64,000 bases of DNA from positions 1 through 64,000 of the IMG/VR virus record IMGVR_UViG_3300033233_000001; one strand, 5' to 3'. The translations under genes and the position numbers were made by a program. Each line of letters opens with the position of its first letter. Within the stretch, counting starts at the first letter, position 1. This document shows, in pieces, positions 4,737 through 62,333 of the stretch. The notes beneath the pieces were generated by a model, which had not been told where the DNA came from, ran no database searches, and was given only the letters and a program-made list of their open reading frames with translations.

Positions 4737-4889
4737 GGTCGGGCTTGCGTCGAGATCCTCTCGCGTGCGAGACTGCGTCCGGGCGTCTCGGGCGCGGTTG
4801 AATATGCCGATGTCCTGCGCCAGCACTAACCGTGAGCCCGCTCTGCTCGGTCGTCGACCGAAGCGGCTGCGTGCGTCGAGGGCTAGGTA

Positions 4890-6371: not shown

Positions 6372-6374
6372 ATC

Positions 6375-7697: not shown

Positions 7698-8245
7698 GGT
7701 ACGCGCTGATCAAGGACGGGACCGTGGAGACCGTGGCGGAAGCCGCTTCGTCCGACGTGTTCGTGCCGCTGGCTGACGAGGACGGGCAGGTCCCGGAGCA
7801 CTACTACGACGAAGCCGTGTTGCTTGCCGAAGGGTTTCGGGTCGAGTGCGGGGATCGGTGGGACGGCAAGTCCTTCGGTCCGCCGGTGCTCACGATCTCC
7901 GTCGACGATGCGAAGCAGATGCAGTACGCGCGAATCGATCAGCGGACGCGCGGGCTCATCTCGATCGGCTTCGAGCACCGAGGGATGAGGTTCTCGCTGT
8001 CGACAGAAGCGCAGGCGAATCTTTCACGTCTGCATCAGTTCGCCGACACGCTTGTGAGTGTTCGCTATCCGACGATCGACAACAGCGCTGAGCTTGTGCT
8101 TGCCGATGCCGACGAGATTCGCGCGTTCGTGCTGGATGCGGTGAGCGTTGTCAGCGACGCACTCCGGTCTGGAGTGGAGCAGAAAGCGGCCGTTCGTGCG
8201 TACACGACCGCCGCTGAAGTGCTCGCGTTTGCCGATCTGAGATAG
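7694..8245 (+). CDS. Tail fibre assembly/chaperone-like protein (DUF4376-like C-terminus)
   Basis: MRYALIKDGTVE start, GDRWDG, IRAYTTAAEV-type end; ATGA overlap with the fibre gene. Confidence 0.65.
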   Translation: MRYALIKDGTVETVAEAASSDVFVPLADEDGQVPEHYYDEAVLLAEGFRVECGDRWDGKSFGPPVLTISVDDAKQMQYARIDQRTRGLISIGFEHRGMRFSLSTEAQANLSRLHQFADTLVSVRYPTIDNSAELVLADADEIRAFVLDAVSVVSDALRSGVEQKAAVRAYTTAAEVLAFADLR

Positions 8246-24909: not shown

Positions 24910-24925
24910 GGCAAGGAGCGCTGTC

Positions 24926-25903
24926 GTGAACTTCAAAAGCTACATCGTGTTGTTGCTGCTCGTCCTGTTTCCGTCGTGCGGGCCTCGTCCGCCTGATTCG
25001 GACGCTGGTCCGCCGGATTCTGGTCCGCCCGAGTTGACGCGCCTGCGCATCATCAACGGTTCGACCGGGACGCTCTGGATCTTCTATCAGATCGGCTCCG
25101 GCGGCGGCTCGATGTCAACGGCGCATCAGGTGCAACTCGCAGCAGGCGGACACATCGACTATCCGATCCCTGACGAAGGCCTCGCGGCCACTCGCTTCTG
25201 GGCAGGGTCTGGATGCGACGACACGGGGAACAACTGTGCGATCGGTCAGAGCGGTGGTCCCACGAGCGAGGGCTTCAACTGCCCGACGTACGGCTGTGCT
25301 CCGCCCGTCGACAGCAAGTTCGAGGGCACCTTCGGCTGTCTGCCGTCGGTGCCGACTGCCGACTGTCAGATCAACCCGTCGAGCCCGACGAGCGCGCCGC
25401 TTCCTACTACCGACTCCTGGGACACCAGCATGGTCGACGGCTTCACGCTGCCGTTCCGCGTCGACGTCATCGGCGACTGTCCGGGCGGCCCGACGAGCAA
25501 CGCGATCGACTGCTCGATGTTGCCGATGAGTATGTGTCCGACGGCCGAAGACCTCTCGACCGGCGGCATGTTCCCGGCGCTGGCCGCTGAGGACATGGAC
25601 GTCACGAACCCGTCGACGATGGCGATTGCCGGCTGCTACGCCGACTGTGCGCGCCTCACGTTCTCTCAGTGGGGCGGCCTCTCGTACGCGCCGGCTTCTC
25701 CCGAGGCGCAGATGTACTGCTGCCCGACGCCGCCGATCTCGCCCGATGCGTGTCGCACCGGGCCTGTCGCGAGCACGGGCTACACGGATCTTGTGCATCG
25801 GACCTGTCCGCAGGTCTATGCCTACTCGTACGACGACGGGACGGGGCTGTTCTCCTGTCCGGCCGGCGTGCGGTACGAGGTCACGTTCTACGCGGCGCAG
25901 TAG
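24926..25903 (+). CDS. Thaumatin-like (PR-5 family) secreted/lipoprotein
   Basis: RFWAGSGCD, KFEGTF, WDTSMVDGFTLP, CPQVYAYSYDD, FSC...YEVTF; 16 Cys after the signal Cys18; AAGGAG RBS. Confidence 0.85.
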   Translation: MNFKSYIVLLLLVLFPSCGPRPPDSDAGPPDSGPPELTRLRIINGSTGTLWIFYQIGSGGGSMSTAHQVQLAAGGHIDYPIPDEGLAATRFWAGSGCDDTGNNCAIGQSGGPTSEGFNCPTYGCAPPVDSKFEGTFGCLPSVPTADCQINPSSPTSAPLPTTDSWDTSMVDGFTLPFRVDVIGDCPGGPTSNAIDCSMLPMSMCPTAEDLSTGGMFPALAAEDMDVTNPSTMAIAGCYADCARLTFSQWGGLSYAPASPEAQMYCCPTPPISPDACRTGPVASTGYTDLVHRTCPQVYAYSYDDGTGLFSCPAGVRYEVTFYAAQ

Positions 25904-33176: not shown

Positions 33177-34475
33177 ACCTAACCCCGGCCTAAAGGCCGA
33201 GGCTTTGCACCTGAGTGACAACATGGAGATGCCCGTAGGTACCCCCAACACTCGACGCGTCCGGCCGGGTTACAGCGGCCAGGCTCATGGCACTGTACGT
33301 CGCGAGACCGCGACGGCTGATGTTCTGAGCCGCGATGGTATCGGCATGACCAGCGTGGCCACACCATACGCATTCAAAGACTGCCTGGCTCTTCCGGTTC
33401 GCCTTGCTGACGAAGCCGCACGCCGGACACGTCCTCGACGTGTTCCGGGGGTCGACCACCATCAGCGCGACGCCCGCCAAGCACGCCTTGTAGGTCACGA
33501 AGCCACGCAGCTGAGCAAAAGACCACGAGGAGCGCACCCGACGCTGTGCCTTCCGAACCGTTGTCCGCTCGCGGATGCCCGTCAGGTCTTCCAGGGCAAT
33601 CCCACGTCCGGTGTCTTTGGCACGGGTGACGATCTTCTTGCTCACGCGATGGTTCGTGTCTCTAGCGAATCTCATCTCCTTCCTGCGACGCTTCTTCAGA
33701 AGCCGCTTCGCACTCTTGGTACCAACAGACTGGAGCTTCGAGCGGGTGTTAGCGTACCGCTCGCGGACGACATTCAGGTGGTCTCCCGCGAAGACCGTAC
33801 CGTCCGAGTCGGTCGTGATGTTCACGACGCCGAGGTCTACGCCGAGAAAGTCGACGGGCTCTGCGGGCTTCTCGTACGGGATGCTGACGCTGACGAGCAG
33901 GTAGAACTCGTTGTCGCGGAAGACCAAGTCGGCCTCGCCGTACTTCGAGGAGAGCAGGCGTTCTCGGTCAGCGTCGCGGAAGAGGATGGGACAGCGGATG
34001 CGACCGTCGAGTGTCGTGAGCGTGATTTCCGTCGACTCCTTCTTGAACGAGTACAGTCTCGTGTCGTAGGCGACGCTGCCGCGCGGGCGGAAGGTCGGGC
34101 AGATACTGCGGTCGCGGACGTAGGCGTCGCAGACCTTTGCAATCGTCCGAATGGCCATCTGCGACGGGAGGCCGAAATCGGCTCGCATGTCGTAGTAGAA
34201 CAGCCGCTGGAGCCGGCGCTTGTCGGCGAGCTTGTGCTCGAAGGCTCGGGGCGCGAGCCAGTTGGCCGCAGCGTTCATGCGCTCCATGGTCGAGAGCAGC
34301 GAGTCGCGCGGCGCCTCGTCGAGCACGAGCTTGCCCTGGACAACCAGAACGGTCGGCGCGTCGGGCTTCTTCGGCTTGCACTTGCGAACCACGGGCGGAT
34401 GGTACCACAGATCTGGAGCACGGAGCAGCGCTTCCTCCCCGCCCTGAAGGACGGGGCTTCCGCGCTGGAGATGTG
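33173..34475 (-). mobile_element. IS200/IS605-family tnpB-only element 2
   Basis: Right end AAAG-CCTCGGCC/GGCCGGGG...GGTTTAC; left-end hairpin CCCCGTCC..GGGCGGGG; target TCAC (34476-34479); TnpA-tail remnant RFLPALKDGASA on + strand. Confidence 0.9.
33190..34392 (-). CDS. tnpB: TnpB RNA-guided nuclease, different clade from elements 1 and 3
   Basis: RuvC FLGVDLG / IALEDL / HADTIAA; CPACG...CVWCG. Confidence 0.95.
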   Translation of the reverse strand: MVRKCKPKKPDAPTVLVVQGKLVLDEAPRDSLLSTMERMNAAANWLAPRAFEHKLADKRRLQRLFYYDMRADFGLPSQMAIRTIAKVCDAYVRDRSICPTFRPRGSVAYDTRLYSFKKESTEITLTTLDGRIRCPILFRDADRERLLSSKYGEADLVFRDNEFYLLVSVSIPYEKPAEPVDFLGVDLGVVNITTDSDGTVFAGDHLNVVRERYANTRSKLQSVGTKSAKRLLKKRRRKEMRFARDTNHRVSKKIVTRAKDTGRGIALEDLTGIRERTTVRKAQRRVRSSWSFAQLRGFVTYKACLAGVALMVVDPRNTSRTCPACGFVSKANRKSQAVFECVWCGHAGHADTIAAQNISRRGLATYSAMSLAAVTRPDASSVGGTYGHLHVVTQVQSLGL

Positions 34476-39834: not shown

Positions 39835-40131
39835 ATGGCTCTGTTTTTTCCGATGATGATCGCGGGCGTAGCGAGCGAGTCAGGTATCAAGACGCCGAAT
39901 TTCGCGACAAAGCGCTCGGGCTCGGGCGATCCGAACGACTTCGACGCCAACGAGTACCCGCACTTCCACGTCTTTTGCGAGGTCACGCTCGGCAAGCCGA
40001 TCAACGCGAGTTCCTGGGACATGTGGGCCACGCACAACGCGAAGGTCATCGCGGCGCTCAGCGAAGAGCGCGTGAAGGCCGTGACCTACGGCGACCTCGT
40101 GGACATGGGTCTCGAACCGTCCTGCCGCTGA
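39835..40131 (+). CDS. Hypothetical protein
   Basis: GGAGG RBS. Confidence 0.6.
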   Translation: MALFFPMMIAGVASESGIKTPNFATKRSGSGDPNDFDANEYPHFHVFCEVTLGKPINASSWDMWATHNAKVIAALSEERVKAVTYGDLVDMGLEPSCR

Positions 40132-40142
40132 GCGTGAGCGTT

Positions 40143-40871
40143 ATGGAACAGATCTACGGCGTCAACGGGCTGTTGTTCTGGTCGGAGCGTGAGATCCGCC
40201 TCCGCCAGATGATGCGCGAGCACTTCGCCGCCGAAATGACGGTGGCGCTACGACAGGTGAACGCGGCGTGGCAGGTGACGGAAATCGAAGCGCCACTTCT
40301 GACCCCGCGCGCAGCGATCAATCCGAACTACACAGACGACGATGTGTGGACGCAGGTGGGGCGTGACCTTGTTCTGCGTCCAGAGACGACGCCGGGCTCA
40401 TACGCGTACGCGTGCCACATGATCCAGCACGAGGTCTTCCGACCGCCGACGTGCGTGTGGCAGGCAGGCAAGAGCTTTCGTCACGAGCAGGACCAGGTGA
40501 CGAAGAACATGCGGCTCAAGGAGTTCCACCAGCAAGAGTTCCAGTGCATCTACGCCGCGGACACGGCGAACGACTACATGGAGGCGTTGGCGCCGCGGGT
40601 GAAGAGCATGATCGCTGAGATCGTCGGTCTGCCGTCGCGGCTCGCGGAGAGCGACCGGCTGCCCAGTTACAGCCGAAGGACGGTGGATGTCGAGGTCGAC
40701 AACGGCGACAAGTGGATGGAAGTCTGCTCGATGAGCACGCGGCTCGACTTCCCGATGAAGGCGCAGATCTTCACCAAGAAGGGCGTGATCAAGAAAGACC
40801 TGCTGGTGTTTGAGGTCGCGATCGGCTTGGACCGGTGCGTCTACAACTTCGAGCAGCGAGCGGCGAGGTAG
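40143..40871 (+). CDS. Class II aminoacyl-tRNA-synthetase-like catalytic core (Gly/Pro-type), no anticodon domain
   Basis: 242 aa; LRPETT, motif 2 QAGKSFRHE...MRLKEFHQQEFQ, RLPSYSRRTVDVE, EVCSMSTRLDF, motif 3 EVAIGLDR. Confidence 0.8.
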   Translation: MEQIYGVNGLLFWSEREIRLRQMMREHFAAEMTVALRQVNAAWQVTEIEAPLLTPRAAINPNYTDDDVWTQVGRDLVLRPETTPGSYAYACHMIQHEVFRPPTCVWQAGKSFRHEQDQVTKNMRLKEFHQQEFQCIYAADTANDYMEALAPRVKSMIAEIVGLPSRLAESDRLPSYSRRTVDVEVDNGDKWMEVCSMSTRLDFPMKAQIFTKKGVIKKDLLVFEVAIGLDRCVYNFEQRAAR

Positions 40872-40876
40872 TAGTC

Positions 40877-41749
40877 ATGTCGTATGCGCATTTGCCCAAC
40901 CTCTACAAGGACCAGACCGTCCTTCTCTTTCGCGAGTGTTACGCGATGGAGAAGCTGGACGGCACGAGCGCTCACGTCTCATGGCGTCACGGCAAGGTCT
41001 GGTTCTCGCCCGGTGGCGAGTCGGCGGTGCGCTTTCAGGCGTGCTTTGACGAGTCGACGCTGACTGCTGCGTTCGAGAAGCTCGGCCACGAGACGGTCAT
41101 CGTGTACGGCGAGGCCTACGGCGGCAGCTGCCAGAAGCAGACATGGCGGTACGGACCGAGCCTGCGGTTCTGCGCGTTCGAGGTGCAGATCGGCGACCTC
41201 TGGCTGTCCGTTCCCGAGGCGCACGAGTTCGTGAAGAAGCTCGGCCTCGACTTCGTGCATTACGTCAAGTGTTCAACCGACCTCGCGGTGCTCGATGCGC
41301 AGCGCGATGCACCGAGCGAGCAGGCGCGCCGTAACGGTGTCGAGGGCGACCAGCCACGGGAGGGCATCGTCATCCGTCCGCTCGTCGAGATGCGCATCGG
41401 CACCGATCGCATCGTCGCCAAGCACAAGCGCGACGACGAGCGTGAGACGGCGACGCCGCGCAAGGTCGTCGACCCCGCGCAGCAGGAGGTGCTGACGAAG
41501 GCCTCGGCGATTGCCGTCGAGTGGGTCACCTCGACTCGTCTTCAGCACGTGCTCGACAAGATGCCGCAGGGCATCGGGATCGAGAAGACCGGCGACGTCA
41601 TCCGCGCGATGACCGAGGACGTCGTGCGCGAAGGCGCTGGCGAGTTCGTCGACAGCAAAGAAGCGCGGCAGGCCATCGGTAAGCGCGCCGGGGAACTCTT
41701 CCGCGCGCACATCAAGAAGGCTGCGTTCGAGCCGAAGGAGACGACATGA
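40877..41749 (+). CDS. ATP-dependent RNA ligase (Rnl2-like)
   Basis: Motif I EKLDGT, VYGEAYG, FCAFEV, EGIVIRP, AKHK. Confidence 0.8.
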   Translation: MSYAHLPNLYKDQTVLLFRECYAMEKLDGTSAHVSWRHGKVWFSPGGESAVRFQACFDESTLTAAFEKLGHETVIVYGEAYGGSCQKQTWRYGPSLRFCAFEVQIGDLWLSVPEAHEFVKKLGLDFVHYVKCSTDLAVLDAQRDAPSEQARRNGVEGDQPREGIVIRPLVEMRIGTDRIVAKHKRDDERETATPRKVVDPAQQEVLTKASAIAVEWVTSTRLQHVLDKMPQGIGIEKTGDVIRAMTEDVVREGAGEFVDSKEARQAIGKRAGELFRAHIKKAAFEPKETT

Positions 41750-42057
41750 CCCCGTTGCGAGTACTGGTCGCGTGGGATGCGCACGCGTGGATTGCCGTCT
41801 GTTTGGAGCGGTATGTGATGGCTCAGGGAAGTGACGAGGAAGACGCGCTCGACGGACTGTCTGCGGTTTGGCGAGCGCAGTCGGACCTCAATCAACGTGA
41901 AAGTCGGCTGTGGGAGGACATCATGGCCGCGCCGGCATGGGCTCACGCGCAGTATCTAGCGCTGCCTGCTGGCTACGAGTGGCACTGCGCCGAATACGGT
42001 GCCGATCGTACGATCCAAGATCGCGTGTTCGAGGTCCGAAAAGAGCCCAAGCGATGA
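41746..42057 (+). CDS. Hypothetical protein (HicB-like N-terminus possible)
   Basis: WIAVCLE..VMAQG..EEDAL. Confidence 0.5.
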   Translation: MTPLRVLVAWDAHAWIAVCLERYVMAQGSDEEDALDGLSAVWRAQSDLNQRESRLWEDIMAAPAWAHAQYLALPAGYEWHCAEYGADRTIQDRVFEVRKEPKR

Positions 42058-42438
42058 GCACAGGCGTCCACTGGACCTGTCGCAAGTCCGGGCACTGGCT
42101 CGGGACCACTCCGAGGTGTGCTTTCGAGGCACGGAAGTTCGCAGCTGGATGGCGCTTGCGTGTGGGCTCACTGCCGTGGGAAGAGAGGGCGTACAAGACG
42201 TTTTCTGAACTCGCACATGCCGCCGATCGGCTGTTGCCTGCGAATGAGCAGTTGTGGGGGACCCGATCTGGGACTGGTGCGGAGCGGCCGTCATGAAGAA
42301 GAAAAAGAAGCCGAGTGCGACAGAGGAACGTGAGAGCCGCCGCGAAAAAGAAAGACGCTTGCAAAGGAGAGCCCTCTACATCATGCGGGACCTGGGGCTG
42401 GTGCGGGGAGACACGAAGCTGGCGCGAGCGCGGCCGTC

Positions 42439-43023
42439 ATGAAGAAACCGAAGAAGAAGCTAGCCAAGCGCTCGCCGAAAAAGAAGAGTCTGCCGGAGCC
42501 CGGCGTGCTGGCGCTGGGCGTGGCCAAGAACGGCGAGATCACGGTCACCGACAGCAAGGGCAAGACAGAGCCGCTCTTCCCTGGCGGCGAGGCCGGACGC
42601 AAGGCGCTCAACGAGCAGCTGGACGAGATGCGCTGGTCGATTCACGAGGGCGGCGTCGAGATCGACGTGGGTGGCGCCTGTCCTGTCCAGGGCGAGGGCA
42701 CGGTCGACGGCTGCGAGGTGTACTTTCGGTCACGAGGCGAGTTCTGGTCGCTGGAGATCACGGCCGACCATGACGATCCGTTCGCCGTCGGTGCCGGGCC
42801 GGGTGGCAAGCCGGGCTGGTTCTTCGAGGTCGGCTACGGCGCCTGGCCGGACGCTGGCTGGATGAGCGGCAAGCACAGCAAGCAGTGCTTCCTCTCGGCC
42901 GTCAATGCGTGGCGTAAGGCGGGCGGACCGAAGGCGACGCAGGGACAGCTGAAGCTGTACCGTCGGTGGCCGGTGCCGGCCGGGCCCGGCGATGAGCCCA
43001 AGGCCTGGCGAGCCCGCCGATAA
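42439..43023 (+). CDS. Hypothetical protein
   Basis: 194 aa. Confidence 0.6.
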   Translation: MKKPKKKLAKRSPKKKSLPEPGVLALGVAKNGEITVTDSKGKTEPLFPGGEAGRKALNEQLDEMRWSIHEGGVEIDVGGACPVQGEGTVDGCEVYFRSRGEFWSLEITADHDDPFAVGAGPGGKPGWFFEVGYGAWPDAGWMSGKHSKQCFLSAVNAWRKAGGPKATQGQLKLYRRWPVPAGPGDEPKAWRARR

Positions 43024-43092
43024 CGTCGGACAACGCTGCGTTTTGTAGTTGCATGCCGCGCGACACGCGCTACTAAGAGGGCGAGGGTACGC

Positions 43093-43389
43093 ATGCCGCT
43101 ACTTCGCACAGATCTGGATCGTCGCTTCTTCCTCGACGTGACCGCCGACGGTGCCGTCTTCATTCGCGAGCGGGGACATCCGAAGATGTCCGGCGCACTG
43201 CCGACGTTCACGACCGACACGCACGACCAGGCGCTGATGCTTCAGCAGCGGCACTGCCGTCGAGCCCGAGACGGCTCGGGCATCTACCGGCTCAACGAGC
43301 CGCCGACCGATCTCGATGCTCTGGGGGGCATCACCGATCTGTTCCGGCTCACCTACGAGGCGATGCTCGCGCGGGAGCAGCGCGCATGA
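43093..43389 (+). CDS. Hypothetical protein
   Basis: 98 aa; first gene after a short intergenic gap. Confidence 0.6.
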   Translation: MPLLRTDLDRRFFLDVTADGAVFIRERGHPKMSGALPTFTTDTHDQALMLQQRHCRRARDGSGIYRLNEPPTDLDALGGITDLFRLTYEAMLAREQRA

Positions 43390-44300
43390 CGCACTCAGGC
43401 ATCGGCGTGGTCATCGCACGCTTCCAGACGACGGAGCTTCACGCGGGGCACCGTGCGCTCCTCGACGAGGTCACGGCGCGGCATCGGCATGTGCTGATCG
43501 TGCTCGGCGTCGCGCGCACGTACGTGCCGACGTTCCAGAACCCGCTGGACGTGGCGCGCCGTGAGCAGATGGTGCTCCACCGGTATCCGAACGCGAAGAT
43601 CGTGAGTCACCGCGACTGCCGCTCGAACGTGCGCTGGTCGGACGGGCTCGACAAGCTCATCGCGAGTGCGATCCCCGGCCAGACAGAAGCCACGCTCTAC
43701 GGGTCGCGCGCGAGCTTCATCGGCAGCTACACGGGCAAGTATCCGTACGTCGAGCTTCCGGAGATCGCGGACATCTCGGGGACCGAGCTTCGACAGGAAG
43801 CAGTCGACCGCCCCGCGCTGTCGCGCGAGTTTCGGGCGGGCGTCGTCTACACGGCGACGACGCGCCCGCCGCTGGTGTTCCAGACCGTCGACATCGCGAT
43901 CGTGAACGGCGATCGGACGCAGGTGCTGCTCGGCAGCAAGCTGGAGGACGACGGCGGCCTGCGCTTCATCGGCGGCTTCGTCGATCCGAAGGACGCGAGC
44001 CTCGAAGCGGCTGCCAAGCGCGAGGCGTTCGAGGAGACCGGAGGCATCGAGCTAGCGGACTTCCGGTACATCGGGTCGTCGAAGATCGACGACTGGCGGT
44101 ACCGGGACACGCGCGACGCGATCATGACGAGCTTCTTCGTCGCGACCCACGTCTTCGGCGCGCCAAAGGCATCGGACGATCTGGACGGGTCGGCGAAGTG
44201 GTATCCGATCTTCGAGATCCGAGACAAGCTCGTCGAGGAGCATCGCGTGCTCGAATCGATGCTGCGGGCGCACGGAGATGGCGCGCGGTGGTGGCGATGA
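43386..44300 (+). CDS. nadM: Bifunctional NMN adenylyltransferase / Nudix ADP-ribose pyrophosphatase (NadM-Nudix)
   Basis: ARFQ...HAGH, NPL...R; Nudix box GGFVDPKDASLEAAAKREAFEETG. Confidence 0.9.
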   Translation: MTHSGIGVVIARFQTTELHAGHRALLDEVTARHRHVLIVLGVARTYVPTFQNPLDVARREQMVLHRYPNAKIVSHRDCRSNVRWSDGLDKLIASAIPGQTEATLYGSRASFIGSYTGKYPYVELPEIADISGTELRQEAVDRPALSREFRAGVVYTATTRPPLVFQTVDIAIVNGDRTQVLLGSKLEDDGGLRFIGGFVDPKDASLEAAAKREAFEETGGIELADFRYIGSSKIDDWRYRDTRDAIMTSFFVATHVFGAPKASDDLDGSAKWYPIFEIRDKLVEEHRVLESMLRAHGDGARWWR

Positions 44301-44722
44301 GTGACGACGAGCGGCTTCGGCTCAAGAAGTTCCTTCTCCGCCTTCACTGGGTCCTGAACCATCCGAGTGCAGGCGGCATGGCGACCATGGCCTATGTACA
44401 TGGCTACGAGTACAAGGGGCCGGTGCTCGACCAGGGCGAGATCAGGACGATGGCCGGTCTGCCGGTGGAGCTTCCGAAGCCGGAGTATCCGGAAACCGAG
44501 TTCTGCGTCGAGCGCAGCCCGCCGCGGCACAACGAGTACCGTGAGATGGGCAGGCCGGTGGAGGCGAACATCGCGTTTCGCGGGACAGCCGAAGCGTGCC
44601 ACGCGTGGATCAAGAAGGAGCGTGCCGACAAACGCTACGACGTGAACACGACTGGCCGCATGCTCCGTACGGAAGAGGAGTGCGAGCGCGCGTTCTGCGC
44701 GCTGTACTGCGTCGAGATCTAA
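44297..44722 (+). CDS. Hypothetical protein
   Basis: Overlap-coupled. Confidence 0.55.
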   Translation: MSDDERLRLKKFLLRLHWVLNHPSAGGMATMAYVHGYEYKGPVLDQGEIRTMAGLPVELPKPEYPETEFCVERSPPRHNEYREMGRPVEANIAFRGTAEACHAWIKKERADKRYDVNTTGRMLRTEEECERAFCALYCVEI

Positions 44723-45546
44723 TGGAGCCCTGGCTAGAAGCTTTCATGATTGGCGACGCGTACGGAAGTGGCTTTGAAATGAAGCCGCCGGAGTACGTCG
44801 CGGAGTTCAACGACGGTCTGACGTACCGGCAGCACGGACTCGATCCGACGCATCGGCCTGGCATGCCGACCGACGACACACAGATGACGATGGCTGTGCA
44901 GGACGTCATGCAGGACGGCTGGGCGAGCGCTCTGCCAATCTCGTACGCCCGTGCCTTCTGCAAAGCATACGCGGCGGCGCCTGCTCCTGGGTACGGCAGG
45001 AGGATGCGCGAGAACCTGGAGGCGGCGATCCGCGCCGAAGCGCCTGGGGCGGCACTGATGCTCGCATGCCAGGGCGGGCTTGCGAGCGGCGTGTTCGATA
45101 CGTGCGGGGCCGCGATGCGTGCGCTTCCGTGCGCTGTCAGCCGGTCGAGCGGCGATAATAGTGATGTCGCCTGTTCGGCGGTCGTGCAGGCGCGATCGAC
45201 GCACCATCATCCGGACTCGATCGACGCGGCTATCGCGGTGGCGCTCGCCGCATGGGTTCCTCTCAGGCTCGACGTCGCGACCGATTTTGTCGAGTGGCCG
45301 TCGCCGTCCAAGTGGACGCCAGGTCAGTGGGAGCGCGGCACCACGCGCGGCAAGGACATCGTGCAGGCGGCGCTCGGGCTGCTCGTACGTCACGACTCGC
45401 TCCATCGGCTGCTGATCGAGTCGGTCGCGCTCGGCGGCGACGTCGACACGCTCGCGGCGCTCTGTCTCGGCATCGGCGCGCTCGCGCCGAAGCGGTGGAA
45501 GAACGATCTGCCGCAGGCGCTGCGGGATGGGCTGGTGCGGCCGTGA
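44722..45546 (+). CDS. ADP-ribosylglycohydrolase (ARH/DraG family)
   Basis: IGDAYG, TDDTQMT, GAAMRALP, GGDVDTLAA. Confidence 0.9.
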   Translation: MEPWLEAFMIGDAYGSGFEMKPPEYVAEFNDGLTYRQHGLDPTHRPGMPTDDTQMTMAVQDVMQDGWASALPISYARAFCKAYAAAPAPGYGRRMRENLEAAIRAEAPGAALMLACQGGLASGVFDTCGAAMRALPCAVSRSSGDNSDVACSAVVQARSTHHHPDSIDAAIAVALAAWVPLRLDVATDFVEWPSPSKWTPGQWERGTTRGKDIVQAALGLLVRHDSLHRLLIESVALGGDVDTLAALCLGIGALAPKRWKNDLPQALRDGLVRP

Positions 45547-46013
45547 TCGGCCAGCCAGGGGACGATGACGCTGCGGAGCGGTTCTATCGCGTCGTGCTCG
45601 CTGACGTGAGCGGGACCGCGACGGACGAAGAGAGCGACATGCTTCGCGCCGATCTCGACTCGGCGCAGGAATGGCGCGCGGTACTCGTGCGCATCTTGCA
45701 AGACACAGAGGCTGCTCTCACGCGGATTCGTGCGGACGTGCAGAGGAAGCACACCGACTGCTTCAAGCGTGGTTCGCGCGGCAAGCAGGAGTACCATGAC
45801 TACGCGGCGGCGAAGGAGCGCGAGCGCGCTGGGCTGGTGAAGCAAAAGGCCGCGGTCGTCGAGGCTCTGAAAGAAGCTAAGTCTGTCTTTGTGTCGCTCC
45901 ACGAGGAGAAGGAAACCCGGGACGGAGGCCAGTGGAATCGCATCGAGAAGAAGGTGGACGCGCTGACCGTGAAGCTCGACGCCCTTCTCGCGAAGATGGA
46001 CATGCGGCCGTGA
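45543..46013 (+). CDS. Coiled-coil hypothetical protein
   Basis: GTGA overlap. Confidence 0.6.
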   Translation: MIGQPGDDDAAERFYRVVLADVSGTATDEESDMLRADLDSAQEWRAVLVRILQDTEAALTRIRADVQRKHTDCFKRGSRGKQEYHDYAAAKERERAGLVKQKAAVVEALKEAKSVFVSLHEEKETRDGGQWNRIEKKVDALTVKLDALLAKMDMRP

Positions 46014-46070
46014 CGCTCGCTCGCAAGAAGTTGTCCGTGCTGCGCGACCACGTGGGCGACGAGCGCTTCC

Positions 46071-46223
46071 ATGACGGACGACGCGTGGTTGGAGATCGCC
46101 TCGGCGCTCAGCGTCGGCAAGCCGACCGTCAGTCGTTGGAAGAACGGAGTGATCGCGCCTCCGCCGACGGTGCGTCGGTGTCTTCGTCAGTGGTTGCTGA
46201 AGCGCATGGAGGAGAGCACATGA
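46071..46223 (+). CDS. Small XRE-type HTH protein
   Basis: Manual translation EIASALSVGKPTVSRWKNGVIAP. Confidence 0.6.
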   Translation: MTDDAWLEIASALSVGKPTVSRWKNGVIAPPPTVRRCLRQWLLKRMEEST

Positions 46224-46585
46224 CGATCATGGACTACGCGACGGAGATCCACGAGGCGTGTACGCGCGCCGCCGCCGACTTCTTCATCGACATCGAGCCT
46301 GGCCGTCGCATCATGCTCTCGCTCGACAACGACATGGCGGATGACGGCAGCTGCTTCGTGCTGCACCGCGAGCGTGTGGAAGAGGGGCCGCCGACGTGGG
46401 GCGTGTACTTCTGGCGGCCCTGGATCGGCGGTGGCGGTCGCGCGATGGTGCCACTCTCCGATGCGCCTCTGACGGCGAGACTCGACTTCATCGAGAGCGC
46501 CGGCCGGCTGCGAGAGGCCTACCTCAAGCAGATCGCGTGGTACGAGATGCGGGCATCGGCAAGATTCGGGAAGGCAAGCCCGTGA
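46220..46585 (+). CDS. Hypothetical protein
   Basis: GGAG RBS; ATGA overlap. Confidence 0.6.
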   Translation: MTIMDYATEIHEACTRAAADFFIDIEPGRRIMLSLDNDMADDGSCFVLHRERVEEGPPTWGVYFWRPWIGGGGRAMVPLSDAPLTARLDFIESAGRLREAYLKQIAWYEMRASARFGKASP

Positions 46586-46830
46586 GTGAGCACGAGTTCG
46601 ATCCGAAGTGTCCGGACTGTCGACCGGTACTGCTGGACCCGACGACCGGTCGCATGCTGGGGCCGAAAGACCCGGCGATGGTTGCAGCCAGCAAGGCCTG
46701 GGACGAGCAGCTGACGCGCGAACAGCAGGAGGCGTGTCATCGGGTCTGGGTGAAGAACAGCCGAGATCCCGCCGACCTGGAAGCGCTGGAGTGCTTCGCG
46801 GCCATGATGCAGAAGATGGCTGGGAACTGA
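46582..46830 (+). CDS. Hypothetical protein
   Basis: CPDC; GTGA overlap. Confidence 0.6.
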   Translation: MSEHEFDPKCPDCRPVLLDPTTGRMLGPKDPAMVAASKAWDEQLTREQQEACHRVWVKNSRDPADLEALECFAAMMQKMAGN

Positions 46831-46844
46831 GAGGAGACACCAAG

Positions 46845-48215
46845 ATGGGTAGCGGCGAGAACATTTTGCTAGCCAGCGACAGTTACAAGATTTCTCACTG
46901 GCGGCAATATCCGAAGGGCACGCAGCGCGTGTATTCCTTCATGGAGTCTCGCGGTGGCGTCCACGCCGACGTGACCTTCTTCGGCCTCCAGTACCTGCTG
47001 ACGCGGTACCTCGAAGGGCCGGTGGTTACGGCCGAAGATCTGGCCGAAGCCACTGACTTCTACCGCGCGCACTTCGGCGCAGATCTGCTGAACGTCGACG
47101 GCTGGCAGCACATCATCGACAAGCACGGCGGCCGTCTACCGGTCGAGATCTGCGCCGTTCCGGAGGGCACGGTCGTGCCCGTGCGCAACGTGCTCATGAC
47201 GATCGAGAACACGGACCCGAAGGTCCCGTGGCTGACGAATTTTCTAGAGACGTTGCTGTGCCAGGTGTGGTACCCGGTCACGGTTGCCACGCAATCGCGC
47301 GCGATGCGCAAGCTGATCCTCGACGCGCTGGAGCATACCGGCGACCCGTCTCTCGTGGATTTCAAGCTCCACGACTTCGGCTTCCGCGGCAGCACGTCGG
47401 TCGAGTCCGCTGGCATCGGCGCGGCGGCGCACCTCGTGAACTTCAAGGGCACTGACACCGTCGCTGGCCTCGTGCTCGCGCGCGACTACTACAGCGAGCC
47501 GATGGCCGGTTTTAGCGTGCCTGCCAGCGAACACAGCACCATCACGTCCTGGGGCCGCGAGCACGAGGTCGACGCGTACCGCAACATGCTCGACCAGTTC
47601 CCGACCGGGCTCGTGGCCTGCGTGTCGGACAGCTACGACATCTACGCGGCCTGTCGCGATCTCTGGGGTACCGAGCTTCGAGACCGCGTGCTCTCGCGCG
47701 ACGGCTGTCTCGTCGTGCGGCCGGACAGCGGCGATCCGCCGACCGTCGTCGTCACGGTGCTCGACATCCTCGGCGAGAAGTTCGGGTTCACCATCAACGA
47801 GAAGGGCTACCGCGTGCTCGACCCGCACGTCCGCGTCATCCAGGGAGACGGCATCGACTACGAGATGCTTGGGAAGATCCTCTCTGCGATGGAGCGTGCC
47901 CGCTGGTCGGCCGATAACGTCGCGTTCGGCTCTGGCGGGGGCCTTCTCCAGAAGGTGAACCGCGACACGCAGAAGTTTGCGATCAAGTGCTCGGCCGTGC
48001 AGATCAACGGTGAATGGCGTGACGTGCTCAAGGACCCGGTAACCGACCCTGGGAAGAAGTCGAAAGCCGGGCGCCTGCGTCTCGTCCGCGAGGACGGCGT
48101 GTACAAGACAGTGACCGGCGAGGGCCCGACGCTGCTGGAGCCGGTGTTCCGTGATGGCGTCGTGTTGCGGCGACAGACGTTCGCTGACGTGCGCCGCCGG
48201 GCTGTTGCCACATGA
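46845..48215 (+). CDS. nadV: Nicotinamide phosphoribosyltransferase (NAMPT)
   Basis: SDSYKISH, HDFGFRG, PASEHS, VSDSYD, RPDSGDP, IQGDGI, FGSGGGLLQ, RDTQKFAIKCS. Confidence 0.97.
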   Translation: MGSGENILLASDSYKISHWRQYPKGTQRVYSFMESRGGVHADVTFFGLQYLLTRYLEGPVVTAEDLAEATDFYRAHFGADLLNVDGWQHIIDKHGGRLPVEICAVPEGTVVPVRNVLMTIENTDPKVPWLTNFLETLLCQVWYPVTVATQSRAMRKLILDALEHTGDPSLVDFKLHDFGFRGSTSVESAGIGAAAHLVNFKGTDTVAGLVLARDYYSEPMAGFSVPASEHSTITSWGREHEVDAYRNMLDQFPTGLVACVSDSYDIYAACRDLWGTELRDRVLSRDGCLVVRPDSGDPPTVVVTVLDILGEKFGFTINEKGYRVLDPHVRVIQGDGIDYEMLGKILSAMERARWSADNVAFGSGGGLLQKVNRDTQKFAIKCSAVQINGEWRDVLKDPVTDPGKKSKAGRLRLVREDGVYKTVTGEGPTLLEPVFRDGVVLRRQTFADVRRRAVAT

Positions 48216-48478
48216 AGCCGCTAGAGTTCAAGGAGAAGATGTACGCGCTGCTCATGCGAGCGGCACAGAACGAGCTTGAGCCTAGCGTGGTCCTTTCCGA
48301 GCTTGGTGATGCGTACGCGTGTCTGGCTCACTGCGGGGGCGTATCGAAGGAAGACGCGTTGAAAGAGATAGCCGACCTCTACGACGACAACGTTGTCATT
48401 GGACACGAGATGGAACGTGAACGCGGCGTACACGGTAGAAACGGATGCTCCGATCCATCCCTTCGGAGACGGCGCTGA
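48212..48478 (+). CDS. Hypothetical protein whose 3' end runs into the first CRISPR repeat
   Basis: ATGA overlap with nadV; last codons encoded by repeat 1. Confidence 0.55.
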   Translation: MKPLEFKEKMYALLMRAAQNELEPSVVLSELGDAYACLAHCGGVSKEDALKEIADLYDDNVVIGHEMERERGVHGRNGCSDPSLRRRR

Positions 48479-48532
48479 CGGGGGGAAGACGATGCCGAGC
48501 AAGACGACTGTAGAAACGGATGCTCCGATCCA

Positions 48533-48994
48533 TCACTGTTCCTCGGCGCGGGAACCCCGTCCTTCAGGACGAGGAGGAGCGCCGCTCCGGTTTTGGTTCT
48601 GGACGTAGCGCGCGACGACTTCTAGCGGCGCGCCGCCGCACGACACGGCGCAGTAGCTCGGCGACCAGAAGTGATCTCCCCAGAGCACGTTCGTGACCTC
48701 GCGAAAGTTCTGCGCCCGCAGCCGTCGCGCGGACACACCCTTGAGCGAGTTCACGAGCTTGGCGATCGCGACCTTCGGCGGGTAGTCGATGAGCAGATGC
48801 GCGTGGTCCGGCTCGAAGTTGGCCTCCCGAAGCTCGCTTCCGAAGTCGGCGCAGACCTCAACCCACGACGCTCGCAGAATCTCGAACGCTCGCTCCGAGA
48901 TCGCGCCTCGCCGGTACTTCGGCACGAAGACCAAGTGCACGGACAGCTTGTGCACGACGTGCCGCCCCTTGCGAAAGTTCTCGACCTGTGCCAT
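48533..48994 (-). CDS. tnpA: IS200-type Y1 HUH transposase
   Basis: HLVFVPKYRR, DHAHLLI (HUH), LVNSLKGVSAR, FWSPSY, RYVQNQ. Confidence 0.97.
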   Translation of the reverse strand: MAQVENFRKGRHVVHKLSVHLVFVPKYRRGAISERAFEILRASWVEVCADFGSELREANFEPDHAHLLIDYPPKVAIAKLVNSLKGVSARRLRAQNFREVTNVLWGDHFWSPSYCAVSCGGAPLEVVARYVQNQNRSGAPPRPEGRGSRAEEQ

Positions 48995-50305
48995 CCTGGC
49001 GTTTCTAGCATGTCGGACACCGACGGCAAGACCAAAAAGCTCAGGACGTCTCGGTACCGGGTCTATCCGACCGACGAGCAGGTCGCCCGCATCGAAGCGT
49101 GGCAGGATCCGCTGCGTCTGCTCTGGAATCTCGGCAACCAGCAGTACTTGTTCTCGCAGGAGCGTTGCCGTTACGGTCGGAAGTGGCCGCACCCGTTCGA
49201 GCAGGCGAACCAGTTGACCGAACTTCGCGCTGAACACGAGCGGCTGCGCGACGTCCCGTACGATCTTGCCGCGCGCGTCTTCGTCGAGTTGAACCTGTCC
49301 TGGCAGCGATGCTGGGCTGGGCTCGCCGAGCAGCCGCGGTTCAAGTCGAAGAATCGCGGCGACTGGACGGTCATGTGCGAGCCGAACCCGAAGGTGTTTC
49401 GGGCCGAGGATGATGCGATCGTCTTCCCGAAGCTCGGGCGGATCGAAGCGGTCGTCCACCGTCCTCTGCTCGGCAAGCCGAAGACCTGCACGATTACCCG
49501 TGACATAGATGAGTGGTACGTCTCGATCGCCTGCGAAGTCGTACGCGATCCTGATGCGTTGCCGCCGCCCGTGCCGGTCGGCGCGCCGGTCGGCATCGAC
49601 CGCGGCGTAGTGAACCTGTTGATGGACAGCAACGCGCGGCCGACGGCGAACGCGCGGTACGACGACCAGACACGTGTGCAGGTCGCTCGTGCGCAGCGCT
49701 CTGCGGCCAAGAAGAAAAAGGGAGGAAAGAACAGGAAGAAAGCAAACAAGGTTGTATCCCGTCTGCGAAGGAAGGCGCGCCGGCAGCGCGACGCCGTTCT
49801 GCATCGCGAGAGTCTTCACTACGCCAAAAATCACAGCGTGGTGGTCATCGAGAAGCTGAACCTCCCGAACATGACGAGGAGTGCGAGTGGCACGGTCGAG
49901 GAGCCCGGTACGAACGTCGCGCAGAAGCGCGGGTTGAACCGGAGCATCCTCGGCGCGGGCCTCGGCAAGTTCGGGACGTACTTGAAGTACAAGGCCAAGG
50001 ACCACGGGTCGACGGTTGTCGAGGTACCGGCGGCCTACACGTCTCAGACGTGCTCGTCGTGCGGACACGTCGCGGCCGAGTCCCGGAAGACACAGAGCGA
50101 GTTCGAGTGCGTCGCGTGCGGTTATTGCCTGCATGCTGACGTGAACGCTGCCAAGGTGATACTCAGCCGTGGAACCCACGGCGGTGCAGTCTGCGGAGGA
50201 TCCGGCGCCCTAGGCCGCCCGAAGAAGCAGAAACTCCGCGTCGTGAGGCGCGGATCTCGATCTGTGTCCGGGAAAGCCCCGGACTTCAGGCCGGGGTAGG
50301 TTTAT
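48537..50305 (+). mobile_element. Complete IS605-type element 3 (divergent tnpA and tnpB)
   Basis: Left-end hairpin CCCCGTCC-TTCA-GGACGAGG after TCAC; right end AAAG-CCCCGG/CCGGGG-TAGGTTTAT; both ends align to element 2. Confidence 0.9.
49010..50299 (+). CDS. tnpB: TnpB RNA-guided nuclease, 429 aa
   Basis: RYRVYPTDEQ; RuvC VGIDRG / VVIEKL / HADVNAA; CSSCG...CVACG. Confidence 0.97.
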   Translation: MSDTDGKTKKLRTSRYRVYPTDEQVARIEAWQDPLRLLWNLGNQQYLFSQERCRYGRKWPHPFEQANQLTELRAEHERLRDVPYDLAARVFVELNLSWQRCWAGLAEQPRFKSKNRGDWTVMCEPNPKVFRAEDDAIVFPKLGRIEAVVHRPLLGKPKTCTITRDIDEWYVSIACEVVRDPDALPPPVPVGAPVGIDRGVVNLLMDSNARPTANARYDDQTRVQVARAQRSAAKKKKGGKNRKKANKVVSRLRRKARRQRDAVLHRESLHYAKNHSVVVIEKLNLPNMTRSASGTVEEPGTNVAQKRGLNRSILGAGLGKFGTYLKYKAKDHGSTVVEVPAAYTSQTCSSCGHVAAESRKTQSEFECVACGYCLHADVNAAKVILSRGTHGGAVCGGSGALGRPKKQKLRVVRRGSRSVSGKAPDFRPG

Positions 50306-50576
50306 GAAGGTAACCCTGACCACGGTGGTAGAAACGGATGCTCCGATCCATCCCTTCGGAGACTCGTAGGCCATCTTGCTACGCTCCGTCGGGTCTCGTG
50401 TAGAAACGGATGCTCCGATCCATCCATTCGGAGACGACGCACAAGGCCACCTGCGAGATCTCTGCGGGTTCGCGAGTAGAAACGGATGCTCCGATCCGTC
50501 CCCTCGGAGACCTCACCGGCACGTGCAGCCGGGCGCGATACTCGACGGACGGTAGGGTTCAAGGTATCCTCGCGAG

Positions 50577-51095
50577 ATGGACACATCCTCCGAGAAGGAC
50601 ATCTGGTGGTTTTTACTCACTTTTTGGCCGTCGATCGTGGTCGCGCTCGCCGTCTACGGCGGCGGCGTGACGGCGAATCGCATCGCGGGGGTCTTCGTGC
50701 CGGCTGCGAAGGACTACTTGACCGGCAAGACGGCCGACGCCGATCCGAAGTGGCCGCTGACCTTCCGGCTCTGGGCCGCGACACGCACCGCGCACCCGTT
50801 CTTCGTCGGCGGGTCCTTCGCATTCGTGCCTGGCCTGCCGCATCCGGACTTCATCAGTAGCCAAGTTAGCGCGGTTCTCTGGTTCGCATTCGCTGGCATG
50901 ATGAACGGTCAAGTCCACATGCTCGTTGATGCTATGAGCAGTCAGGTCCAGAAGGTCGTTGGCAGTCTCGCGCCTGCGATCCGAACACGTCTCGGCCTGC
51001 GTCCGACGACAGTGCCCCCGGGACCGCCCGAGGCGGCGGCCCCAGCCGCTTCAGACAAGCCGCCGTCCGACCCGCCGCCACCGGAGGCCGCGTGA
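50577..51095 (+). CDS. Membrane protein (holin-like possible)
   Basis: 2-3 hydrophobic segments; Pro-rich tail. Confidence 0.55.
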   Translation: MDTSSEKDIWWFLLTFWPSIVVALAVYGGGVTANRIAGVFVPAAKDYLTGKTADADPKWPLTFRLWAATRTAHPFFVGGSFAFVPGLPHPDFISSQVSAVLWFAFAGMMNGQVHMLVDAMSSQVQKVVGSLAPAIRTRLGLRPTTVPPGPPEAAAPAASDKPPSDPPPPEAA

Positions 51096-51370
51096 ACCTC
51101 GTCGAGGCCGCGACGCCTGTCCGTTTCGTCCGGGAGGTCGTGGCCGGCGGCGTGCGTTTCGAGCGTGGGCACGAGACGGAAGCGAAGCTGCTGCCGCGCG
51201 GCGTTCTGCCGAAAGACGGCGACGTCACGATCTTCCACGAGTCGAAGTACTGGAATGTCGAGGAATGGAGACCACGCGGGTACTGTCTGGTCCGAACCAT
51301 GGTGCCGTGGATGCACGAAGTCGACGTTCCGCGCTCGGCGCTGAAACTCAACTGGTCCAGGAGGCGATGA
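51092..51370 (+). CDS. Hypothetical protein
   Basis: GTGA overlap. Confidence 0.55.
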   Translation: MNLVEAATPVRFVREVVAGGVRFERGHETEAKLLPRGVLPKDGDVTIFHESKYWNVEEWRPRGYCLVRTMVPWMHEVDVPRSALKLNWSRRR

Positions 51371-51449
51371 TGATGTTCGTCGAGTTTCTGCACTTCCTGT
51401 TCGTCGCGTTTGCCGTCTGGCTCGTCGACCTGTTCACGTGGCCGGCCAC

Positions 51450-51824
51450 ATGAGCAAGCAGTACACGGCGAAGATGCGTCCAGATGTGGGCATGTCTCGC
51501 GTCAATCTCGCCGGGCTCGTCCCCGACGAGATCATGTATGGCCCTGGTGGCTCATTGATCGTCGAAGTCGAGGTTGTTCGCGCAGTCACGTCGGAGTTCA
51601 TGCACGTGATGTTGCAGTTGCAGGAAGGGAGCCATCCAGAGGGGAACGTCGACATCATCTCAGGCTCGACGACTGTGTTCAGGATGTCGAGGAGAATCGA
51701 GGCCCGTCGTGGATGGGACCTAGTGGCGTGCTTTTACTACGGTGCGTGGTACTCGACGCCGGCCGTGCAGACCGCGGAGTCGGACAATTACGTCATCGTG
51801 CGCGTCTCGTCGAGACCGGCATGA
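51450..51824 (+). CDS. Hypothetical protein
   Basis: ATGA coupling. Confidence 0.55.
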   Translation: MSKQYTAKMRPDVGMSRVNLAGLVPDEIMYGPGGSLIVEVEVVRAVTSEFMHVMLQLQEGSHPEGNVDIISGSTTVFRMSRRIEARRGWDLVACFYYGAWYSTPAVQTAESDNYVIVRVSSRPA

Positions 51825-61949: not shown

Positions 61950-62333
61950 TCAGCCCTTCGCACGCTTCGCGGCGGGCGTGGTCGATGAGGATCGTCGGTC
62001 GCGAAGGCGAAGTTGCCGCCACGTGCGTCTTGAGGTACCGTCTGCGCTGGATGCTCCGATCCATCCACTCGGAGACGCCAGACGCGCGAGCCGCGCCCAC
62101 GCTTGCTGCGCCGCGGCCCCGAAGACGGGGCGCGCCGCGCCGGGGAGCATGACGCCGACGTCCGCCGGCAGCAGGCCAGTGGCGATCCAGTACTCGCCGG
62201 TCGGCGTGCCGTAGACCGGCTCCGCCTCGTCGATCTCGCGCTCCTGGGCTTCGACGAGCACTTCCGAGCGGCCGTCGAAGATCCACAGGCCGCTGTCGCC
62301 GCCCTGGTCCCAGGTGAGGTCGAAGATGCGCAT
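61950..62333 (-). CDS. Hypothetical protein whose 3' part reads through the solitary repeat
   Basis: TGATG coupling to the upstream gene. Confidence 0.5.
   Translation of the reverse strand: MRIFDLTWDQGGDSGLWIFDGRSEVLVEAQEREIDEAEPVYGTPTGEYWIATGLLPADVGVMLPGAARPVFGAAAQQAWARLARLASPSGWIGASSADGTSRRTWRQLRLRDRRSSSTTPAAKRAKG
62049..62076. repeat. Solitary 28-nt CRISPR repeat unit
   Basis: GGATGCTCCGATCCATCCACTCGGAGAC = repeat positions 9-36 with 2 mismatches. Confidence 0.85.

Follow-up and report, generated by a model that had tools for sequence, protein, structure and literature searches.

The window analyzed here comprises bases 1–64000 of the linear, 297,749-bp jumbo-phage record IMGVR_UViG_3300033233_000001 in IMG/VR, and contains a chain of rightwards-oriented genes, beginning at position 43093, that is probably a salvage and reconstitution operon for nicotinamide adenine dinucleotide (NAD+). 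We interpret it as an operon of the NARP2 (NAD+ reconstitution pathway 2) type, in which an ADP-ribosylglycohydrolase (ARH) of a phage-specific clade has become fixed in a variable slot between the genes for a NadM-Nudix protein and nicotinamide phosphoribosyltransferase (NAMPT). The gene identities, the intact catalytic motifs, the gene order, the coupling of the genes and the conservation of the arrangement are all directly observed. NAD+ is central to the conflict between bacteria and phages, and phages are known to rebuild it through the published routes NARP1, NARP2 and NARP3, with an extension of NARP1 by a phosphatase that beats a modified-ADP-ribose defense. The presence of an ARH fixed in the NARP2 operon of a jumbo-phage lineage suggests that NARP2 has been extended too, towards bound ADP-ribose.

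Organization of the operon

The chain was assembled from lists of open reading frames (ORFs), family scans, direct reading of the junctions and a codon-position GC plot; the standard genetic code and unspliced gene models sufficed. Its genes are as follows.

43093–43389, + strand, g98: 98 amino acids (aa), function not assigned; first gene of the chain
43386–44300, + strand, NadM-Nudix: 304 aa; nicotinamide mononucleotide adenylyltransferase (NMNAT) domain (residues ~1–150) fused to a Nudix domain (residues ~160–290)
44297–44722, + strand, g141: 141 aa, member of a rare uncharacterized family
44722–45546, + strand, ARH: 274 aa, ADP-ribosylglycohydrolase of the ARH/DraG/ARH3 family
45543–46013, + strand, g156: 156-aa orphan, mostly helical by eye
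46071–46223, + strand, g50: 50 aa, helix-turn-helix-like by eye
46220–46585, + strand, g121: 121-aa orphan
46582–46830, + strand, g82: 82-aa orphan with a CxxC pair
46845–48215, + strand, NAMPT/NadV: 456 aa, nicotinamide phosphoribosyltransferase
48212–48478, + strand, g88: 88-aa orphan

Seven junctions in the chain are stop/start overlaps of 1 or 4 nt, as read from the sequence. Those between g98 and NadM, NadM and g141, g50 and g121, and NAMPT and g88 have the form ATGA, those between ARH and g156 and between g121 and g82 have the form GTGA, and at the g141/ARH junction (TAATG) the ATG of the ARH gene overlaps the g141 stop codon. At the two remaining junctions the genes do not touch: g156 is followed by g50 after 57 nt, and g82 by NAMPT after 14 nt. 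A ribosome-binding site, GAGAGGAGA, serves NAMPT, and GGAGGAG lies 5′ of the g121 ATG. GC content at third codon positions (0.78–0.88) backs all of the ORFs of the chain, including the small ones (g98 0.79, g156 0.80, g121 0.85, g82 0.78), with the exception of g88, where it is weaker (0.66). The gene g50 was absent from the list made in an earlier sequence-only reading of this DNA and surfaced in the GC frame plot.

That reading had described nadM-Nudix, ARH and nadV as co-oriented and overlap-coupled. All three do lie on the + strand at the positions given and are correctly identified. The coupling holds for the chain as a whole, running through the small ORFs, and does not extend to direct contact among the three enzyme genes; NadM-Nudix and NAMPT are separated by 2.5 kb containing the ARH gene and five small ORFs.

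The NARP2 core

The NAMPT assignment rests on a score of 613.8 bits against NF006629 (cut-off 405; 1.8e-184), a match to phrog_448 at 6e-169, and Pfam matches to both PF18127 (NAMPT_N, the NAMPT-specific N-terminal domain; 1.3e-39) and PF04095 (NAPRTase; 1.5e-62). Relatives are common, and tblastn found matches in 2021 of 50,697 phage records, the best at 56% identity.

The NadM-Nudix protein was recognized from its two halves. Pfam detects only the C-terminal half (NUDIX, PF00293, 3.9e-14), and the N-terminal half matches the phrog_395 cytidyltransferases (8e-9), with HxGH and SGTxxR motifs in a NadM-type domain at 43386–43850; NCBIfam models NF003786 and NF003787 (bifunctional NMNAT/Nudix, PRK05379 models) align to both halves, in order. 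It has 902 homologues, many with PF01467 plus PF00293 and named by JGI as bifunctional NMNAT/nudix hydrolase. The HxGH histidines, the SGTxxR arginine and the R-E...E-E residues of the Nudix box show little or no variation across a 74-sequence alignment, with H19, H22, R136, R212, E213 and E217 the same in every sequence and E216 in nearly all. By eye, the Nudix box carries an extra residue ahead of the RE pair, a feature also of X29/Nudt16. An AlphaFold2 model built from a 4-sequence alignment was unusable (predicted local distance difference test [pLDDT] score 51), and a profile search of solved structures was relied upon instead; the 74-sequence profile has as its top PDB matches Francisella NadM-Nudix (2QJT, 4.6e-23, in two stretches) and its Synechocystis counterpart (2QJO, 6e-16), followed by archaeal NMNATs. 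The protein thus has nucleotidyltransferase motifs at its N-terminus, a Nudix box at its C-terminus and an in-order match to solved bifunctional structures. Two other Nudix matches are found elsewhere in the phage genome, one of them under the cut-off.

The NARP2 route is known from Vibrio phage KVP40, where it consists of Nampt plus Nmnat/NatV, and its prevalence has been published (Osterman et al., 10.1101/2024.02.11.579819). The assignment of this NAMPT and NMNAT-Nudix pair to NARP2, as the sequence-only reading had it, agrees with the sequence-level definition in that study on each point: a Nampt of the NAMPT/NadV family is present, the phage also encodes an Nmnat homologue, whose gene shares the strand of NAMPT and precedes it by 2.5 kb, and there is no Adps partner, which would point to NARP1. 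No Adps/Prs-like gene (PF13793) was found in the 297,749-bp record, which is estimated to be ~90% complete, and all 14 of 14 control genomes matched in this search. The pairing itself is a standard unit, already known and common. This NadM subtype was found at 297 IMG/VR loci, of which the best 80 were surveyed with purpose-built profiles; in 74 of the 80 NAMPT lies within 7 kb, always downstream and on the same strand.

A role of the pair against host defenses has experimental precedent, as NARP2 cancels Thoeris, DSR2 and aRES (10.1101/2024.02.11.579819; 10.64898/2026.01.28.702374). A more modest view, which we regard as doubtful, is that the operon provides general metabolic NAD+ support for the replication of a large phage, with the ARH and Nudix domain engaged in ADP-ribose housekeeping and counter-defense not its primary purpose. 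NARP2 genes do increase NAD+ in cells devoid of any defense system (10.1101/2024.02.11.579819), NadV is reported in 22% of medium and 33% of jumbo phages in PMC9503650, and the neighbors of the operon are nucleic-acid enzymes (a methylase, HNH and RNA ligase proteins) and not known anti-defense genes. Set against this are the cancellations of Thoeris, DSR2 and aRES just mentioned, and a genome scan showing the phage to be without an NAD-dependent DNA ligase, hence with no special NAD+ demand from that source; the support and counter-defense roles are also compatible with each other.

The ADP-ribosylglycohydrolase

The ARH protein belongs to PF03747 (2.8e-27; 96.6 bits against a cut-off of 26.2), and it is the only ARH in the genome by a genome-wide scan. 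At the motif level it is intact, with every catalytic motif of the family retained. The blocks GDAYG..FE, TDDTQM, GAAMR, TH and GGDVDT are all conserved, and 28 homologues all share T50, D51, D52, D240 and D242, with E19 and T243 shared by nearly all; the ligands of the binuclear metal center (the E of GDAxGxxxE, the TDD and the DxDT) are kept, and the protein is predicted to be active. ARH enzymes differ in the linkages that they attack: the substrate of DraG is Arg-linked and that of ARH3 is O-linked, and ARH3 cuts 1″-O-glycosidic ribose bonds and O-acetyl-ADP-ribose. The family profile matches DraG (2WOC, 6e-29) and ARH3 (~1e-26 to 1e-28) about equally well, with ARH1 more distant, so the sequence does not indicate the substrate, and the score against the DraG equivalog TIGR02662 is 41.1 bits (cut-off 337).

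A word search returned eight relatives at 51–61% identity followed by a gap, with cellular proteins below 40%, and the nine phage ARHs group together in a tree as a single, long-branched clade (100/100 support). A tblastn search of the INPHARED phages with the ARH gave no match. In a search for a phage-encoded ADP-ribosyltransferase (ART) that the ARH might regulate, genome scans with PF03496 and PF01129 were empty, and the control genomes were silent as well; Pfam, PHROG and NCBIfam scans of the ARH neighbors found no ART-family match.

Placement of the ARH in related phages

Three relatives share the arrangement: IMGVR_UViG_3300037483_001170 (sampled as L002, L003 and L017), Logan contig SRR16630534_34696 (L006) and JGI contig Ga0265320_10000592 (L008). 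In the window, L002/L017, L006 and L008 the order is NadM, small ORF(s), ARH, variable slot and NAMPT, and the wider shared order comprises an RNA ligase, a few small genes, NadM-Nudix, one or two small ORFs, ARH, the slot, NAMPT and a 172-aa gene. The relatives are 53–63% identical to the window in ARH, 70–79% in NadM and 65–74% in NAMPT, and the order has therefore outlasted substantial divergence. The slot differs among them; it is empty in L002, holds a 232-aa ORF, a His_Phos_1 phosphatase and a 126-aa ORF in L006, His_Phos_1 plus a 71-aa ORF in L008, and g156, g50, g121 and g82 in the window. The other ADP-ribose-processing or phosphatase genes in the clusters of the relatives are these His_Phos_1 genes (L006, L008) and a NADAR gene immediately 3′ of NAMPT in L006. 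Among the 80 surveyed NadM loci, NADAR is present in two, and His_Phos_1 likewise in two. In the phage of the window the sole NADAR gene (PF08719, 1.4e-25) is at genome positions 284544–284939, ~240 kb from the NAD operon.

In this lineage, then, the ARH is found repeatedly between NadM and NAMPT but is neither obligatory in that interval nor confined to it, and a number of observations weigh against reading the whole as one pathway. Relative L015 has NadM, four small ORFs (one a g141 homologue) and NAMPT without ARH; NadM and NAMPT are adjacent and lack ARH in Tunturiibacter phage Tunturi_5; and ARH is found in just 1 of the 80 surveyed NadM loci, in a close relative that was already known. 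Conversely, the phage-clade ARHs of L005 and L007 have neither NadM nor NAMPT within 7 kb, and the L007 ARH neighbors are proteins without assigned function; the relatives are metagenomic fragments, and a gene missing within 7 kb is not necessarily missing from the phage. The interval is a hot-spot for unrelated small genes, such that the adjacency may be positional and not functional, and NARP2 has no need of ADP-ribose as a substrate, which makes ARH dispensable for the core pathway. The NadM-Nudix protein is a member of a divergent subfamily, assigned by its architecture rather than as an equivalog: its best score against the NCBIfam equivalog models is 40.6 bits with a cut-off of 397, and its substrate preferences could consequently differ from those of the studied enzymes. 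Finally, no RNA run was found to hold the stretch, and only one sediment metagenome run, perhaps its source, holds it, as contigs.

The L005 ARH has a setting of its own. On this 160,816-bp contig (JGI 3300037484, Ga0395807_0000035), positions 3304–8014 encode a metallophosphatase, an 827-aa VWA protein and a 150-aa ORF, followed by ARH, a layout like that of the bacterial ARG-phosphatase-vWA systems (ARG being the ADP-ribosylglycohydrolase domain) described in PMC9503650.

One could take the ARH to be an independent accessory gene of the variable slot that clears ADP-ribose placed on macromolecules of the phage or the host by host ART defenses, with no hand-over to the Nudix domain or NAMPT. 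This is possible, and the less probable interpretation. It accommodates slot contents that differ in each relative (none, His_Phos_1 plus orphans, or four orphans), the ARH-less L015 and Tunturi_5 clusters, and the location of the L005 ARH (beside the metallophosphatase and VWA protein) and L007 ARH away from NAD genes, and phage ARG domains are argued to prefer macromolecular conjugates in PMC9503650. It does less well in accounting for a position common to four phages whose ARHs are just 53–63% identical, and for the recurrence of homologous ARHs in cellular NAD-salvage operons and beside Nudix genes. An accessory role is also compatible with the NARP2-type operon that we favor, because any ADP-ribose freed would meet the Nudix domain.

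Cellular homologues of the ARH

The neighborhoods of cellular homologues were sampled at 80 species-representative genome loci, with ARHs of 29–37% identity, by clustering the neighbors and annotating the main clusters. The majority of these neighborhoods are unrelated to NAD, a further point on the negative side. Several are NAD-salvage operons: uncultured Dokdonia sp. (L125, 4309–9463) has NrtR, a NAMPT-like phosphoribosyltransferase (PRTase), a Prs-like gene, NADAR, ARH and KptA/Tpt1; Flavobacterium covae (L162) has NrtR, a Prs-like gene, NADAR and ARH; a Woesearchaeota metagenome-assembled genome (L105) has NAMPT, PncA, GNAT, NadE, ARH and Nudix; and a metagenome contig (L011) has NrtR, a type II PRTase, ARH, a second ARH and PncA. 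Another 10 loci, exemplified by one from Nostoc, form a cluster with a stand-alone Nudix gene immediately 5′ of ARH. The tie of this ARH subfamily to NAD and ADP-ribose metabolism is thus not peculiar to phage. We note that the NAMPT-like and short Prs-like pair of the L125 type resembles the Namat/Adps pair of NARP1.

The conserved placement of the phage ARH taken together with the cellular operons favors a functional connection of the ARH to the pathway, and it is mainly the presence of cellular homologues in NAD-salvage operons that leads us to prefer such a link over mere adjacency. The proposal in the sequence-only reading of a single extended module stands in part. ARH does lie between NadM and NAMPT in the window and three relatives, and its cellular homologues do occur in NAD-salvage operons; the module is not a fixed one, given a variable slot, the missing ARH in L015, Tunturi_5 and 79 of the 80 NadM loci, and the L005 and L007 ARHs located elsewhere.

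In Actinokineospora (L010/L111) two TIR-domain genes adjoin ARH, and this bears on an idea that we think unlikely, namely that the ARH acts on soluble ADP-ribose (ADPR) derivatives made by defense systems, erasing the signal while the operon rebuilds NAD+; candidates are the glycocyclic ADPR or His-ADPR of Thoeris, O-acyl-ADPR and similar 1″-linked conjugates. The ARH profile is as near to ARH3 as to DraG, the substrates of the Nudix partner are small molecules, and a phage enzyme acting on a small ADPR derivative is already known inside a NARP operon (10.64898/2026.01.28.702374). The TIR association is found in one genome only, no literature on such an activity in an ARH turned up, and PMC9503650 argues for the opposite preference of phage ARG domains.

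A proposed pathway

What each enzyme does, what the ARH acts on, the passage of ADP-ribose to the Nudix domain and the role against defenses are all inferred, as follows. By homology, NAMPT would convert nicotinamide and phosphoribosyl pyrophosphate (PRPP) to nicotinamide mononucleotide (NMN), which the N-terminal domain of NadM would adenylylate to NAD+. The C-terminal Nudix domain is predicted to split free ADP-ribose into AMP and ribose-5-phosphate, and the latter could be returned to PRPP by Prs of the host, on which this step would rely since the phage lacks a Prs of its own. The ARH would cut ADP-ribosyl linkages, freeing ADP-ribose and removing the modification or conjugate, and conjugate-bound ADP-ribose, once freed, would enter the Nudix step and the recycling route. 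The ARH arrangement, rare and common to a few related phages, probably feeds bound ADP-ribose into recycling. The likely pay-off is resistance to NAD+-depleting defenses, possibly extending to ADP-ribosylating defenses that consume NAD+.

A bolder version, which we advance only tentatively and hold to be rather improbable, is that ARH and Nudix constitute a third arm of NARP2 that strips or linearizes defense-made ADP-ribose conjugates, whether macromolecular or soluble products of the TIR/Thoeris type, with g141 as a pathway factor. If true, freed ADP-ribose would pass through Nudix to PRPP and NAD+, so that one operon both cancels the defense output and refills NAD+, as an ARH-extended counterpart of the NARP1-AP operon described below. 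Confirmation that NARP2 has been extended towards bound ADP-ribose would join NAD+ recycling, within one transcription unit, to the reversal of ADP-ribosylation or to the erasure of an ADP-ribose signal, and would indicate a defense output beyond the reach of plain NARP2. It would also provide a function for the phage-only ARH clade and for its homologues in the NAD-salvage operons of bacteria and archaea, which the papers found leave unexplained.

The small ORFs

The small intervening ORFs had been put forward in the sequence-only reading as candidate anti-defense factors, a suggestion that did not find support: none of them matches Pfam, PHROGs, NCBIfam or PADLOC, and most have no counterpart in the closest relatives. 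Their anti-defense label rests only on position in a variable slot. Specifically, g156, g50, g121, g82 and g88 have no counterpart in the relatives examined. A homologue of g98, 72% identical, lies upstream of NadM in L002/L017 and is kept only in this closest relative; g98 has no family match, and its scores in the Atlas feature search are below 0.8. The gene g50 might encode a small regulator or be the first gene of a two-gene cassette.

The g141 product is 48% identical to that of the ORF immediately 5′ of ARH in L006, and a profile search of 1.84 billion proteins found just 13 representatives of its family at E≤1e-3; a word search found only itself, and the Atlas feature search scored below 0.8. 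Its AlphaFold2 model is good (pLDDT 87.6, predicted template modeling score 0.71), and structural comparisons gave no match above noise with Foldseek against PDB and BFVD (E>0.1), a best Z of 4.9 with VIA-align wide (TetR C-terminal domains) and TM<0.4 in the Atlas shape search. A search of its profile against PDB gave E 0.075, and such weak or missing matches do not make the fold a new one. We note that two distant members, P0249 and P0250, have long C-terminal extensions with weak, sub-threshold CUE/UBA-like matches. A dedicated partnership of g141 with ARH was ruled out by its homologue in the L015 NadM-NAMPT cluster, which lacks ARH, and for the same reason g141 goes with the NAD operon rather than with ARH.

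Neighboring features and the phage record

The record is ~90% complete (CheckV), and a copy of the same contig is held at JGI as Ga0334722_10000009; the window is ~65% GC, and the window's own record was left out of some of the searches. A Pfam family is missing for the majority of its large ORFs, as is usual in jumbo phages, and no tRNA genes were found in the window. A megablast search of the INPHARED phages with the operon region and an Rfam scan of 42000–51500 gave no match, and promoter and terminator scans reached chance level only. The features flanking the operon include the following.

39975–40871, ORF with a class II aminoacyl-tRNA-synthetase core (PF00587, 7e-9), directly 5′ of the RNA ligase
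40835–41749, RNA ligase (PF09414), upstream of NadM
48435–48470, 48510–48537, 50328–50363, 50400–50435 and 50476–50511, 36-nt direct repeat, four full copies and one truncated
48533–50299, IS605-type element, splitting the repeat array and lying between g88 and the conserved 172-aa gene
Stop at 48533, − strand, IS200-like Y1 transposase tnpA, ~150 aa
Ending at 50299, + strand, TnpB (OrfB_IS605 plus Cas12f1-like TNB)

The RNA ligase is 74–80% identical and in the same position 5′ of NadM in L002, L006 and L008, and L015 also has a PF09414 RNA ligase in the equivalent position. A link to RNA repair through Tpt1/KptA was rejected, as there is no such gene in the phage genome, and the upstream RNA ligase is a matter of conserved synteny only.

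The repeat layout looks like a CRISPR mini-array. The spacers are unique, of 39, 36 and 40 nt, the final repeat copies are slightly degenerate, the 3′ part of the repeat forms a hairpin with a 6-bp stem and a 9-nt loop, and the first copy overlaps the final codons of g88; solitary copies are found at 62049–62077 in the window and at 204952–204987 in the genome. A 22-mer of the repeat occurs in IMG/VR and the JGI metagenomes in the source contig only, spacer 24-mers have no match in IMG/VR, and the related phage contigs have no such array. Other TnpB-like ORFs lie in the window at 10354–11670 (− strand, full length) and near 33310–33501, and in the genome at 177089–177403. A 391-aa ORF at 24728–25903 belongs to the thaumatin family (PF00314, 2.6e-16), which seems unusual for a phage.

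Comparison with known systems

Among the closest known systems is the NARP2 of KVP40. Both have a NAMPT-family enzyme and a NadM-type NMNAT-Nudix in one large phage lacking Adps, and both have the same predicted chemistry starting from nicotinamide, PRPP and ATP. The operon described here, known from sequence, differs in the 2.5 kb with ARH and five small ORFs that intervenes, and in its divergent NadM-Nudix.

NARP1-AP has the order Adps – Macro phosphatase Adpp – Namat, with a Macro domain that is an ADPR-1″-phosphate phosphatase (10.64898/2026.01.28.702374), and is similarly a phage NAD+ reconstitution operon plus one enzyme that yields plain ADP-ribose from a derivative, which for the ARH is a prediction. 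The two differ in their cores, as NARP1 takes ADP-ribose directly and NARP2 does not, and in the fold of the accessory enzyme, which is Macro in one and ARH in the other; a substrate (ADPR-1″-phosphate) and a target (aRES) are defined only for NARP1-AP. There is no Macro domain in the genome of our phage, which accordingly has no NARP1-AP-like operon, and L006 and L008 carry His_Phos_1 instead.

The ARH itself shares the fold family and binuclear-metal motif set of DraG and ARH3, its best solved-structure matches. It departs from DraG in having no DraT-like transferase among its neighbors, and D97 of DraG aligns by phmmer with the glycine of the ARH segment PGYG, within a segment of low alignment confidence.

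Phage ARG domains have been described previously (Iyer et al. 2022, PMC9503650); they are found in ~5% of jumbo phages, NADAR genes adjoin NadM/NadV, and phage ARGs are argued to act on macromolecular adducts, with no link to salvage drawn in the available sections. A literature search combining ADP-ribosylglycohydrolase with phage and NAMPT returned only this paper, whose available sections describe no ARG inside a NadM-NadV operon. The neighborhoods that it reports are alike in placing an ADP-ribose-deconjugating domain beside phage NAD+ salvage genes; in those sections it is NADAR, not ARG, that adjoins NadM/NadV, whereas here ARH is inside the operon and NADAR is ~240 kb away.

NrtR-regulated salvage operons of bacteria resemble the phage operon in combining homologous ARHs (29–40% identity) with NAMPT-like, Prs-like, PncA, NadE, Nudix and NADAR genes. 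ARG-centered bacterial systems with Nudix transcription factors and phosphatases are known as well (PMC9503650, section 3.8), and phosphatases also accompany the ARH in the phage relatives L006 and L008. The phage operon differs in having no NrtR-type regulator, and the phage ARHs form their own long-branched clade. The cellular role proposed for the bacterial systems is to counter viral ADP-ribosylation, which places them on the opposite side of the conflict.

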